Sequence record: MF360958.1
Strand: one strand, 5' to 3'
DNA: 64,000 bases
Shown here: positions 32,469 to 37,217 of the stretch, in pieces
Layout: each line of letters starts with the position of its first letter
How positions within the stretch are numbered: the stretch's first letter is position 1
Translations under genes and position numbers: made by a program
Notes under the pieces: model-generated
What the model saw: only the letters and a program-made list of their open reading frames with translations
Database searches by the model: none
Told to the model about the DNA's origin: nothing

Positions 32469-32492
32469 AAAAGGGGCTGTCCAAGCCCCTTT
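32469..32492. terminator. Bidirectional intrinsic terminator
   Basis: aaaggggct-gtcca-agccccttt between convergent genes. Confidence 0.85.
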
Positions 32493-33513
32493 ATTTTTTT
32501 AAACCATTAGCAATAATAGGTTGACCAAATTTCCAATGTTTAGCCGTTTGTATATGATCTTTTCTCACAACTTTAGCAATACTAGACATAAATTTTGCAT
32601 ATGGAAATGATTCAGCAATCCTTATAACCAATCCTTCCATACTACTCCAATGTTTAGTATCATCATAAAGTGTTTTAATATGGTTCTCATCATAGATTCC
32701 ATCATATAATACGGGTACAGGTTGTATTCCTAAAAGATCAAACCATTCTAATGTTTCATCCCAAGAGAGACATTCATTTTTTTCATTCCATATAGAAAAT
32801 CCATAAAAATAACTGTCTAAGTTATTGTAAGCAATAGAATGTTGCGCATACATGTTTTCACCGCAAATCCGCCATCCTTTTGGAATATCATGAGCAAATG
32901 TTCGATGAAAATTCTTCACCCAATCTCTTGAAGCATGGCTTTGACCATCTATAGAACGGGCATGGATATAATCATGATATAAACTTGTATTCTCGCCATC
33001 TAGTTTTTCAGTAACTATTACCCTTTGACCATGAAACGGTTTCATTGTTTTATGAACTCGGTCATCGTCATGAATTCCTTTTGACCATGGTGTATGTTTA
33101 GTTCTCGGATATTTTACATATTCGGTGAATAAGTGAAAAACGCCGCCCTGTTTAAGTACTTTTTGAACGGTATCATCATAGAATAATTCTCCTTTAGTAC
33201 GCATTCCGTTTTCTAAAATTCCATTACCCCATTTATCATAGCTATGATCAGGATAAAGATGCTCAGGAACGACAACTTTGGTAATACCCGCGTATTCGCG
33301 AATTTCTTCTACTGAAATCACAGTCTGTTCACATTTAATGTGACACTCTCCACAGACTGAAGCGCCGTTATCTATATAATAACCCCCATCATGGAACAAA
33401 CGTCTTTCCATGATGTGGTGTGCGTCTTGTGCTGGATAACCACAAACAACACATTTATGATTGTCTCTTTCAAACACTGCATTTCGAAAAACATCTCTTG
33501 ATAGTAATTTCAT
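32491..33513 (-). CDS. HNH-type domain fused to an ATP-dependent RNA ligase
   Basis: N-terminus CVVC...DAHH...NG...CGECH; C-terminus KYPRT.H, VTEKLDGEN (KxDG), GEN.YA.HS, EG.VIR, KVVR..H. Confidence 0.85.
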   Translation of the reverse strand: MKLLSRDVFRNAVFERDNHKCVVCGYPAQDAHHIMERRLFHDGGYYIDNGASVCGECHIKCEQTVISVEEIREYAGITKVVVPEHLYPDHSYDKWGNGILENGMRTKGELFYDDTVQKVLKQGGVFHLFTEYVKYPRTKHTPWSKGIHDDDRVHKTMKPFHGQRVIVTEKLDGENTSLYHDYIHARSIDGQSHASRDWVKNFHRTFAHDIPKGWRICGENMYAQHSIAYNNLDSYFYGFSIWNEKNECLSWDETLEWFDLLGIQPVPVLYDGIYDENHIKTLYDDTKHWSSMEGLVIRIAESFPYAKFMSSIAKVVRKDHIQTAKHWKFGQPIIANGLKK

Positions 33514-33525
33514 TATTAATATCCT

Positions 33526-34557
33526 TTACTTATCATCAATTAGACTTTCATTAAAAACGTCTCTAATTTTTTGTTTTGATTCTTCAGTAACTACATTATC
33601 ATAATAATCTTGAAATTTTCTCAGAAAATTTCTGATAGAAGGCTGTTTTCCACTATAAGCATCACATGTTATTTTAAAATCGTTTTCAAAAAACATTTTC
33701 AGTCCATGTTCTGTTAGTGTTGTGTAATACTTATAATTAAGCCTAAAGTTATTATATAAAGCAGGAAATCTATCATTATCAATTCTAAAATTTTTGATAG
33801 TGATATCAAGCATATCCGGTTCAATACCTAAACCTTCATTAATGCTTGAATGAATAGCTTTATCCCAATCTTTTTTTCTCATAGTCCATTCATAATGGCT
33901 TATATCTTCTGGTTGATCTGAACTATTTTGATAATGATAATCGTACATAACACCACTATCAATAATGTTTTTAAATATTTGATCATTACAACTAAAACCA
34001 AGAAGTTTCTCATTATCTAACGGAAATAGATAAATCATGTATGAATTGCTTTCTGGTTTTGCAAACCTGAAATCATAATAATTTTTTAAACTAATAAATT
34101 GTCCTAAAATTATAATATAGAGCACAAGAAAATCACTTTTGTAGTCATCAGAAGTGATATCAATATTATAATTATTTTTTATAAAATTAGTAAATTCTTC
34201 ATTTTTGCCTTGTTTAATATTTTCAAACCGCTTTTGTATTTTCGCATCATTGAACTCTCGTTCAATTTCATTTTTAATAGTTTCATAACTATCATCTTTA
34301 TCGATTAGTGTTTCTCTAATACCAGTAAATACGTTATCAAGAAATCGTATTTCTTGGAAAACATAATCAGTAGGAACATACCCTTTGTAACGTATCAACC
34401 CATAAACGTAATTTCTAAAAAATTCATTAAAGCTGTTATAGATTTCATCTATGATACCTTGCTTCTGAATTTCTCTAAGTGTTTGTTGAAAATTTGATAA
34501 CTGTTTGATTGTCTTAACGTCATTGGTCATAAGACCATTGTAAATTTTAGTTGACAT
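33526..34557 (-). CDS. Conserved phage hypothetical protein (MSTKIYNG family)
   Basis: GGAG RBS before the ATG at 34557; Y.YQNSSDQPEDIS..EW..R..DWD motif. Confidence 0.7.
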   Translation of the reverse strand: MSTKIYNGLMTNDVKTIKQLSNFQQTLREIQKQGIIDEIYNSFNEFFRNYVYGLIRYKGYVPTDYVFQEIRFLDNVFTGIRETLIDKDDSYETIKNEIEREFNDAKIQKRFENIKQGKNEEFTNFIKNNYNIDITSDDYKSDFLVLYIIILGQFISLKNYYDFRFAKPESNSYMIYLFPLDNEKLLGFSCNDQIFKNIIDSGVMYDYHYQNSSDQPEDISHYEWTMRKKDWDKAIHSSINEGLGIEPDMLDITIKNFRIDNDRFPALYNNFRLNYKYYTTLTEHGLKMFFENDFKITCDAYSGKQPSIRNFLRKFQDYYDNVVTEESKQKIRDVFNESLIDDK

Positions 34558-34701
34558 ATATAGCTCCTGTGAGATGATTATTGATGTTAGGAAGATCCTA
34601 CATGATCTTGAAAGCAATATCAAGAATTTCCAAATAGTATTGACATATTATGCTTAATATGATAAATAATCATACACACTTGAAAAAAAGTGTACCCATA
34701 A

Positions 34702-35850
34702 GGCGATAGAGCCAAACTATAATAGGAGATAAGACTATGAGCAATTTCAAAATTGGCGTCATTATTGGACGCTTCCAACCACTACATAATTCTCACGAAA
34801 AACTTATTCAACATGCTTTAGAACACTCGGATTATGTTATTATTCTTGTAGGTTCTGCAAATAGAGCACCAGATTCAAATAATCCTTATTCCTATCAGGT
34901 TCGTAAAGAATTTATTGAAAATATGATGCATGAATATGAAATCAGCCATGGTCGTTTTTCAGTATATCCTCTTAATGATTATAAGTATAATGATGCTTCA
35001 TGGCTTACTCAAATTCATTCCATTGTAAGCACAGTAGAGCGTACTTATAACAAGTATACAAATACTGAAATCAGCTTATACGGGCACCATAAAGATAACA
35101 GTACTTATTACATGAACAGTTTCCCTACTTATAGTATTGTTGATGTAGGAAATATTGATAACGTTTCTGCTACGCAGGTTCGTGAATATCTCTATAATCG
35201 CGAGTACGATAAAGCACGAAGCCTAGTGCCTGATTATGTTTACAATCGTGTATATTATGATGCGAAAGGCAGATATACTCCTGAATCCGAAGAATTTGAT
35301 AGACTAAGACAAGAACATTTTTATATTCAGCATTATAAAGATGCATGGAAAGATGCGCCTTATGAGCCTATTTTTACAACAACAGATTCAGTAGTGTATT
35401 TCAAAGGCTATATCCTTCTGGTTAAACGTAAGTCTCATCCGGGCAAAGGCCAATGGTGTCTACCGGGTGGATTTGTAAAACCAGAAGAATGGATCAAAGA
35501 TTCAATCATTACGAATCTTAAAAAGGATACGAATATTAAAGTAGGAGCGCCTATCCTACGCTCTAACATTCGTGAAATGGAAGTGTTTGATGATCCCGGA
35601 CGTTCACTTCGCGGACGCATCATTACTCATTGCGGGCTTATTGTTCTTGATGGGGTAAGCTCAATGAGTGAACTTCCAAGTGTGAAATCTCAGTCTAAGG
35701 GAGATGTACACGCACAATGGTTCCCCATTAGTGATGTGGAAAGTATGAGTAATGAATTATTTGAGGATCATTACTTCATTATTAAGCAAATGCTTAAAAT
35801 TAATAATTAATGGCGATAGAGCCAAACTACAATAGGAGATAAGACTATGA
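34702..35850 (+). repeat. 39-nt direct repeat forming the leaders of nadM (34702-34740) and nadV (35812-35850)
   Basis: ggcgatagagccaaacta[t/c]aataggagataagactATGa; one mismatch. Confidence 0.9.
34737..35810 (+). CDS. nadM: Bifunctional NMN adenylyltransferase / Nudix-fold protein; Nudix box degenerate
   Basis: IIGRFQPLHNSH, ILVGSAN, NP....R, SATQVR; C-terminus TTDSVV, LLVKR...PGKGQWCLPGGF, DDPGRSLRGR.ITH, FEDH. Confidence 0.92.
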   Translation: MSNFKIGVIIGRFQPLHNSHEKLIQHALEHSDYVIILVGSANRAPDSNNPYSYQVRKEFIENMMHEYEISHGRFSVYPLNDYKYNDASWLTQIHSIVSTVERTYNKYTNTEISLYGHHKDNSTYYMNSFPTYSIVDVGNIDNVSATQVREYLYNREYDKARSLVPDYVYNRVYYDAKGRYTPESEEFDRLRQEHFYIQHYKDAWKDAPYEPIFTTTDSVVYFKGYILLVKRKSHPGKGQWCLPGGFVKPEEWIKDSIITNLKKDTNIKVGAPILRSNIREMEVFDDPGRSLRGRIITHCGLIVLDGVSSMSELPSVKSQSKGDVHAQWFPISDVESMSNELFEDHYFIIKQMLKINN

Positions 35851-37217
35851 ATATTAACAACTTTTTTCTAAACACCGATTCTTACAAATTAAGCCATTTT
35901 AAAATGTATCCTAAAAATACAGAAAAGATGTATTTTTATATTGAAAGCCGTGGTGGTCGATTTGAAAATCAAATTTTCTTTGGGCTCCAATATTGGATTA
36001 AAAATCTACAGAATAACTTCCCAACTATGAATGATGTGGAAGAAGCTAATGAGCTAAGTAAAGCTCACGGAGTTCCATTTAATTACGAAGGAGCTAAGAA
36101 ACTAGTCGAGAAAGGGCATTTCCCCATTCGTATTAAAGCAGTTCCAGAAGGCACTGTTATTAATTACAAAAATGTAATGGTAACGGTTGAAACAACCGAT
36201 CCTGAATTTTATTGGCTTGCTTCCTATCTAGAAACATCACTTCTACGAGATATTTGGTTTGGTACCGCTGTAGCTACATACAGTTATCAGTGTAAAAAAG
36301 TTATCGAACAGTATCTTGAAGAAACCAATGATAATAAAGAAACACTACCTATTAAGCTGCATGATTTTGGGTCTCGTGGCGTATCAACCCATGAAGGTTG
36401 TGGTGTAGCAGGCATGGCGCATCTAGTTAACTTCATTGGTACTGATAATTTAACATCAATTAGTTTTGCGGATAAGTACTATAACAGTGGTGTATGTGGA
36501 ATTACCATTCCAGCAGCCGAACATAGTACAATCTGTGCTTATGGTAAGGATCATGAACAGAAAGCATACGAAAATATCATGAATAAATATCCTACGGGAC
36601 TTCTTTCAATTGTATCCGATACATACGATCTTGATAATGCGGTACGTAACATCTTTGGTGAAAATCTCAAAGATCAGATCCTTTCAAGAGATGGTACTGT
36701 GGTAATCCGCCCCGATAGTGGTGAACCATCTGAAATTGTTCCAAAAGTACTCAATATTCTTTGGGAAAAATTTGGTGGTGAACATAACACTAAAGGTTAT
36801 GCGGTATTGAATGATAAAGTGCGTGTTATCCAAGGTGATGGTGTATCCTATGAATCCATTGGAGAAATTCTTGAAGCTGTTAAACAAGCTGGATTTTCAA
36901 CTGATAACCTTGCTCTAGGCATGGGTGGTCAGCTTCTTCAAGCGCATAATCGTGACGATCTAAAATTTGCAATGAAGTGTTCAAATCTTGAAATCGATGG
37001 ACAAAGTATTGATGTTTATAAAGATCCTGCTACTGATTCTTCGAAACGCTCCAAAAAAGGGCGTCTCGCTCTCATTGAAAATGGTAATGGATCATTTAGT
37101 ACCGTAGCAGAAGATTACACAACGGGCGATATGAACGTTCTCAGGACCGTTTATGAAGATGGTAAACTGCAAGTAGATGATGATTTTGAAACGGTGCGTT
37201 CACGCCAAAATCGATAA
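35847..37217 (+). CDS. nadV: Nicotinamide phosphoribosyltransferase
   Basis: TDSYKLSH, FFGLQY, LHDFGSRG, AHLVNF.GTD, IPAAEHST, SIVSDTYD, VVIRPDSG, VIQGDGV, GMGGQLLQ, KSKKGR-like end. Confidence 0.97.
   Translation: MNINNFFLNTDSYKLSHFKMYPKNTEKMYFYIESRGGRFENQIFFGLQYWIKNLQNNFPTMNDVEEANELSKAHGVPFNYEGAKKLVEKGHFPIRIKAVPEGTVINYKNVMVTVETTDPEFYWLASYLETSLLRDIWFGTAVATYSYQCKKVIEQYLEETNDNKETLPIKLHDFGSRGVSTHEGCGVAGMAHLVNFIGTDNLTSISFADKYYNSGVCGITIPAAEHSTICAYGKDHEQKAYENIMNKYPTGLLSIVSDTYDLDNAVRNIFGENLKDQILSRDGTVVIRPDSGEPSEIVPKVLNILWEKFGGEHNTKGYAVLNDKVRVIQGDGVSYESIGEILEAVKQAGFSTDNLALGMGGQLLQAHNRDDLKFAMKCSNLEIDGQSIDVYKDPATDSSKRSKKGRLALIENGNGSFSTVAEDYTTGDMNVLRTVYEDGKLQVDDDFETVRSRQNR

Follow-up and report, generated by a model that had tools for sequence, protein, structure and literature searches.

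Depletion of NAD is a widespread bacterial defence, and the phage pathways that rebuild NAD have become a topical subject. To our knowledge, NatV of Vibrio phage KVP40 is the only phage homologue of the NadM-type NMN adenylyltransferase (NMNAT)-Nudix fusions to have been studied biochemically, and we know of no work asking what the Nudix domain fused into the NARP2 pathway does. NARP2 is the pairing of a nicotinamide phosphoribosyltransferase (NAMPT) with an NMNAT (bioRxiv 10.1101/2024.02.11.579819). Its ability to rebuild NAD+ and to overcome an NAD-depleting defence has been demonstrated for KVP40 only (bioRxiv 10.1101/2024.02.11.579819), and it is reported to be costly and somewhat toxic through overproduction of NAD+ (bioRxiv 10.1101/2024.02.11.579819; 10.64898/2026.01.28.702374).

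Among cellular proteins, NadM-Nudix fusions have been described in Synechocystis (slr0787, PDB 2qjo) and in Francisella (2qjt/2r5w). A Nudix domain is also the effector domain of NrtR, a transcription factor with a winged-helix DNA-binding domain. NrtR proteins with perturbed Nudix boxes bind ADP-ribose with no appreciable or detectable ADP-ribose pyrophosphatase activity, and restoring the box of the Synechocystis protein slr1690 raised its catalytic rate 600-fold (PMC2330246). Nudix folds that bind NAD metabolites inside multidomain proteins are likewise found in DBC1 and in channel-gating domains (PMC5389931).

A NARP2 gene pair in Salicola phage SCTP-2

The DNA analysed here (the window) is a stretch of 64,000 nucleotides from record MF360958.1, the 440-kb genome of Salicola phage SCTP-2, a phage of a solar saltern. 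Within the window, gp103 (34737..35810, + strand) encodes a protein of 357 residues in which a NadM-type NMNAT (PF01467) is fused to a Nudix-fold domain (PF00293), the latter match reaching 30.7 bits, above the Pfam gathering threshold of 21.1. The protein could be aligned end to end with Synechocystis slr0787 (E 9e-63) and with Francisella NadM (E 3.5e-60). Directly downstream lies its NARP2 partner gp104 (35847..37217, + strand), encoding a nicotinamide phosphoribosyltransferase (NAMPT/NadV; PF04095, 1.2e-51; PF18127, 4.8e-23). gp104 is the only NAPRTase-family gene of the SCTP-2 genome and gp103 its only NadM gene, a search of the genome for a second NadM paralogue having found none. By gene content, a NAMPT and an NMNAT in the same phage, gp103 and gp104 thus make up a NARP2, like the tested pair NadV and NatV of KVP40, in which the NMNAT is also a NadM-type fusion with a Nudix domain. 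It had been suggested that gp103 might spare ADP-ribose for another route; the 440-kb genome holds no PRPS-like Adps gene of NARP1, and this idea was rejected.

Both signature motifs are intact in the NMNAT half of gp103. The HxGH-type motif IGRFQPLHNSH (residues 10-20; 34764..34796, + strand) has G11, R12, Q14, P15, H17 and H20 in columns that are 96-100% conserved among 149 canonical homologues, and the ISSTxxR-type motif SATQVR (residues 144-149; 35166..35183, + strand) has T146 and R149 in columns 95-100% conserved. N49, G116, K119 and D120 complete the set of 12 canonical-invariant NMNAT columns, none of which is altered in gp103. Judged by these motifs, gp103 most likely functions as an NMN adenylyltransferase that converts the NMN of the adjacent NAMPT into NAD+.

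A replaced Nudix box beside a retained pocket

The Nudix-fold domain comprises residues 196-357 (35322..35807, + strand); taken alone, it matched 2qjo (2e-37) and the NrtR Nudix domain 3gz8 (1.8e-6). The original prediction, made from the DNA alone, held that its Nudix box had lost the catalytic residues. The box occupies residues 245-267 (35469..35537, + strand), the same 23 residues as were quoted in that prediction, and alignment to 2qjo and 2qjt bore out four of the five proposed substitutions: T259, N260, K263 and D264 stand opposite the R, E, E and E of the signature GX5EX7REUXEEXGU (R15T, E16N, E19K, E20D), SCTP-2 reading ...IITNLKKDTNI where slr0787 reads ...MLRELKEETRL and Francisella NadM ...IIRELFEETNI. 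An intact signature is therefore absent from gp103, and the glutamate of GX5E (E251) is kept. The fifth substitution, G22 to N, is not a loss, as slr0787 has R at this position and both the active Francisella NadM and KVP40 NatV have N.

At the core of the box, NLKKDT (residues 260-265; 35514..35531, + strand) takes the place of ELxEET. Besides the box glutamates, the canonical acidic KGxDDA loop is gone from gp103: VKSQSKGD (residues 316-323; 35682..35705, + strand) lies at the site of VKGxDDA. Canonical proteins keep G318, D320, D321 and A322 of that loop at 94-99%; the variant group described below lacks these residues. The REUXEE glutamates serve as ligands of the catalytic metals, and this role, together with the concerted loss of the acidic loop, makes canonical hydrolysis very unlikely. 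The flanking elements TTDSVV, LLVKR, PGKGQWCLPGGF, DPGRS.RGR.IT and FEDH, predicted to be intact, are indeed so and coincide with columns invariant in the 149 canonical homologues. For the pocket motif DPGRSLRGRIIT (residues 286-297; 35592..35627, + strand), D285, P287, R289, S290, R292, G293, R294 and T297 are 100% conserved in canonical and variant proteins, and in FEDH (residues 342-345; 35760..35771, + strand) neither group shows any change at E343, D344 or H345. Sequence comparison thus finds in gp103 both a perturbed Nudix signature and a retained ADP-ribose pocket: as read from the alignment, the side of the site that held the metals has turned from acidic to basic and the other parts of the pocket are untouched.

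gp103 shares two-domain architecture, fold, NMNAT motifs and pocket motifs with slr0787 and Francisella NadM (34% identity) and departs from them at the four box positions and the acidic loop. KVP40 NatV (32% identity) has, unlike gp103, a canonical box, IRELQEETNI, and a PADDA loop. None of the seven NCBIfam equivalog models reached its cut-off with gp103, the best being NF003786 (311.6 bits, cut-off 397). Because gp103 fails both the Nudix signature and all of these cut-offs, annotation as an ADP-ribose pyrophosphatase is not warranted.

SCTP-2 encodes three further small stand-alone Nudix ORFs (L086, L087 and L088, at about 255.3, 236.9 and 329.3 kb of the record), all below NCBIfam cut-offs and all with canonical boxes. 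Since these lie in the same AT-rich genome, the box change of gp103 does not reflect genome-wide drift or composition. One of the three, gp402, is found 2 kb upstream of a cREC gene.

NLKKDT marks a constrained group of phage proteins

Two word-index searches yielded a homologue set of 176 aligned sequences. The canonical RE[LVIM]xEET is present in 149 of them; NLKKDT occurs without any deviation in 13 proteins, SCTP-2 included, a number to be read as a lower bound for the variant group. The members besides SCTP-2 come from phage-like metagenome contigs of at most 458 kb, and identity between the sub-groups of the 13 is 32-45%.

The group was compared column by column with the 149 canonical homologues. 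Seven residues occur at the former R15 and six at the former E7, with N, K, K, D and T fixed; on this alignment, the R15 and E7 positions are freed from constraint. All remaining Nudix columns that are invariant in canonical proteins are retained at 100%: T215, D217, R231, G236, PGGF, T265 and W328 in addition to the eight residues of the DPGRSLRGRIIT region and the three of FEDH given above. The KGxDDA loop is Lys/Arg-rich instead, and T295I, A241C and G276S covary with the loss of the acidic loop across the group. The claim that catalytic residues were lost is therefore right as regards the metal-binding residues, which are gone, and too modest in its wording, as a new invariant motif and not random degradation is found in their place. 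The homologue survey had been expected to reveal selection on the pocket but not on the box: the pocket is 100% kept, but the replacement in the box is invariant too.

Over the Nudix half, NLKKDT proteins share on average 59.0% pairwise identity, and canonical proteins 58.8%. In codon alignments of close NLKKDT pairs, the Nudix half gave pN of 0.04-0.10 against pS of 0.55-0.70, and dN/dS of about 0.04-0.08 where dS was unsaturated; because saturation of dS affected several pairs, with pS as high as 0.9, the figures are pN/pS and values from unsaturated pairs. The N-terminal half of the NLKKDT relatives is likewise constrained (pN 0.09-0.16). Neutral decay, the outcome that the original prediction had set against itself, is contradicted by these values, by conservation at the canonical level and by the intact frame. 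It is excluded for the relatives, and it is implausible for SCTP-2 because gp103 keeps all group-invariant residues.

The variant appears to be rare in the collections searched. Among 77 NadM loci recovered from IMG/VR, 76 have the canonical box, the sole exception (L071) being an NLKKDT protein on a 239-kb fragment with an estimated completeness of 54%. When two divergent NLKKDT queries were run against 50,697 GenBank phage records, SCTP-2 was the top match by far (3e-48 vs 9e-27 for the next best with one query, 7e-76 vs 4e-54 with the other), which makes it the only cultured NLKKDT carrier found.

Placement of SCTP-2 within the group

The nearest sequence relatives of gp103 are seven proteins (P0002-P0008, 45-47% identity) with the box KE[VIL]KEET, intact NMNAT motifs and a DA loop. 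They show R15K and have M, L or I for the GX5E glutamate, and all three metal-binding glutamates are kept. NAMPT is the next gene in P0008 (L110 2808-5359), the one KE-type member checked in context. This sister group may represent an intermediate state.

The NLKKDT and KE-type groups formed a clade of 20 proteins (support 99/95). SCTP-2 joined the NLKKDT proteins in a quick tree built with the box columns removed (SH-aLRT 92) and the KE-type group in a more careful tree from which the box and the co-varying columns had been dropped (96/89). The AU test did not reject NLKKDT monophyly (p 0.394), and single-domain trees gave no decision on the placement of SCTP-2. SCTP-2 may be separated from the other members in such trees because their dead NMNAT halves evolve fast. 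A single origin of NLKKDT, with SCTP-2 as the least derived member, appears more parsimonious, if not proven, because about ten derived states are shared: the six box residues, C241, S276, I295 and the loss of the loop. Convergence, or an exchange of the box region, may also have given SCTP-2 its NLKKDT.

Structural comparison with NadM and NrtR

An AlphaFold2 model of gp103, built from a nine-sequence alignment, had a mean pLDDT of 84.7 and placed the box on a helix (residues 253-265). Foldseek searches with this model returned 2qjo and 2qjt at the top (TM 0.85-0.94), the whole model scoring TM 0.86-0.94 against 2qjo, followed for the Nudix half by the ADP-ribose-bound NrtR Nudix domain. After NadM, the NrtR domain (Shewanella oneidensis 3gz8 with ADP-ribose; Synechocystis slr1690) is the closest to that of gp103, and the Shewanella box, RKLAEKT, also has lysines for glutamates. 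By analogy, the Nudix domain of gp103 probably works like the NrtR effector domain. The two differ in that the gp103 domain is fused to an enzyme, and in that the box changes of NrtR are irregular whereas the replacement motif of the gp103 group is invariant. A C-terminal winged-helix DNA-binding domain is absent from gp103, which ends 12 residues past FEDH and scored 27 bits with NF050029 against a cut-off of 400. DBC1 and the channel-gating domains also have a non-catalytic Nudix fold within a multidomain protein; these are eukaryotic and are expected to share no recognisable sequence similarity with gp103 apart from the fold.

Loss of NMNAT motifs and gene context in the relatives

Most NMNAT-invariant residues have been lost in the other 12 NLKKDT proteins, SCTP-2 alone having intact motifs. 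At the site of GRFQPxHxGH the relatives have SKFSFVTREMFH, NRFSYITEDH or GSYQPLDNKE, and their second NMNAT motif lacks the arginine. NAMPT adjoins the NLKKDT gene in SCTP-2 but in none of the other 12. The relatives' gene lies in a conserved block consisting of cREC, DUF3307, one or two small genes, the NadM-like gene, a gene of about 74 aa and Thg1, then Rhomboid and HD domain genes, with Acb1 and ArfA a few kb upstream (contigs up to 458 kb). For cREC domains, a role in processing derivatives of ADP-ribose has been predicted (PMC9503650).

In seven of these loci (L103, L104, L002, L004, L005, L071 and L109), NMNAT motifs and Nudix box are both changed and both halves are under strong purifying selection; the gene order on these contigs is cREC-DUF3307-x-NadM-like-74aa-Thg1-285aa-...-Rhomboid-HD. 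One relative with an NMNAT-dead NadM-like gene, of 239 kb (IMG/VR UViG_3300021979_000003), has no NAMPT in the available fragment. It encodes a NadR-like NMNAT-kinase (347 aa) followed directly by a PnuC-like membrane protein (235 aa; L099 1486-3233), a pair that corresponds to the NARP3 arrangement (PMC13464706).

Possible functions of the NLKKDT domain

We favour, with modest confidence, a reading in which gp103 combines an NMNAT with a non-hydrolytic Nudix module that binds an ADP-ribose-type molecule and has a role separable from NMNAT catalysis. The domain would belong to a conserved, phage-specific subfamily in which the nucleotide pocket is untouched and the metal-holding acids (E16, E19 and E20 of the box and the downstream DDA loop) are swapped for N, K and D and for basic loop residues. 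It would no longer carry out the canonical Mg-dependent hydrolysis of ADP-ribose, and would instead bind ADP-ribose, or a more phosphorylated or cyclic derivative, directly through its lysines, as a sensor or a sequestering module. The retained pocket, the invariant replacement residues and the strong purifying selection argue for a ligand-dependent function, and the acidic-to-basic shift suggests direct, metal-free contact with phosphate; the ligand may be more heavily phosphorylated than ADP-ribose itself. That the module is kept in relatives with a catalytically dead NMNAT half implies a selected role separable from NMNAT catalysis. To this extent the predicted ADP-ribose sensor is upheld, NrtR-like ligand binding without hydrolysis being the best reading of a site that has lost its metal residues. 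Against such pure binding, D264 and the invariant E343, D344 and H345, in SCTP-2 also E251, could still support chemistry, and an invariant K-K-D motif is equally to be expected of a new catalytic centre. A new enzyme, one that converts an ADP-ribose-type substrate through another mechanism, is thus a serious rival, although on balance we think it unlikely. K262, K263 and D264 could act with E343, D344 and H345 in metal-independent or single-metal chemistry, which could for example open or trim a cyclic or phosphorylated ADP-ribose derivative. The six NLKKDT residues are strictly invariant, beyond mere tolerance, and the relatives' neighbours cREC, Thg1 and Acb1 are enzymes acting on cyclic phosphates and RNA ends; yet no Nudix-fold enzyme with such a box was found in the literature searched, and every known ligand residue of the catalytic metals has gone at once.

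The original prediction had gone beyond ligand binding and proposed that the inactive Nudix domain detects ADP-ribose set free by host NADases and in response turns the NMNAT on allosterically, yielding a demand-regulated NARP2. In SCTP-2 both halves look functional, are fused and have NAMPT adjacent, and regulation would pay, given the reported cost and toxicity of NARP2 (bioRxiv 10.1101/2024.02.11.579819; 10.64898/2026.01.28.702374). However, the domain is strongly selected in 12 relatives after loss of their NMNAT motifs, which argues that its conserved function is not control of NMNAT; one NMNAT-dead relative carries the NadR/PnuC pair instead; and P0002-P0008, the nearest proteins with an intact NMNAT (with NAMPT as neighbour in P0008, the member checked), keep the box glutamates. 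A switch of NMNAT in SCTP-2 itself is possible but unsupported, and we regard it as rather doubtful. Still less probable is that the Nudix fold persists only as a dimerisation surface or scaffold of NadM, hydrolysis having been dropped to avoid a futile NAD cycle. NadM-Nudix enzymes do dimerise via domain swapping (PMC5389931), and an activity degrading NAD or ADP-ribose would be a disadvantage in an NAD-rebuilding enzyme, but a mere scaffold fails to explain the 100% kept pocket (R289, S290, R292, R294, T215, D217, W328 and EDH) and leaves the invariance of the replacement residues unexplained. As for the decay of an unneeded domain, for which the missing glutamates alone speak, the low dN/dS in the relatives, the invariant motif and the other signs of constraint make it extremely improbable.

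Non-catalytic Nudix domains are already known; the NLKKDT form in phage NadM is new, and our literature search found no paper describing it. The lineage is deep and selected, has given up the canonical catalytic residues, has kept the pocket and has survived the death of the NMNAT; this suggests a second function, independent of the first and connected with ADP-ribose-type molecules. Among cultured phages, SCTP-2 alone provides a protein in which the two functions can be compared directly, and the switch, if true of this phage, would answer the reported cost of an unregulated NARP2. A bolder and decidedly speculative proposal, improbable as it stands, is that NLKKDT Nudix domains are a new class of phage counter-defence module. 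They would capture or sense a molecule derived from ADP-ribose and formed when the host defends itself or when RNA is damaged; examples are cyclic ADP-ribose isomers, ADP-ribose-1''-phosphate and ADP-ribose 1''-2'' cyclic phosphate. The module would be coupled to NMNAT in SCTP-2, as a demand-gated NARP2, and would stand alone within the cREC/Thg1/Acb1 block in the relatives.

Leader copies and RNA-repair genes in SCTP-2

gp103 and gp104 are each preceded by a copy of a 38-nt leader. The first, before nadM (34702..34739, + strand), comprises a -10-like box, an AGGAG ribosome site and the ATG; the second lies before the NAMPT gene (35812..35849, + strand). The copies differ at one base, and these two are found in the window where none is expected by chance. 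Each leader has a small GGC...GCC hairpin, with weak folds (z about -2.4). An Rfam scan of positions 34400-36000 gave a chance miRNA match only, the leader itself having no Rfam match.

Two genes upstream of gp103, gp101 (32491-33513, - strand) encodes an N-terminal HNH motif and an RNA-ligase domain (PF09414, 3.2e-33), so that RNA-repair genes are found near the NadM-like gene in SCTP-2 as in its relatives. The cREC and Thg1 genes of SCTP-2 lie elsewhere in the genome, away from gp103. The Thg1-like gene (record positions 335384-336199, outside the window; L096, and L111 7885-8700) appears in the annotation as two adjacent CDS, gp417 and gp418, and its Pfam match crosses one in-frame TAA, which may reflect a split gene, readthrough or a sequencing issue.
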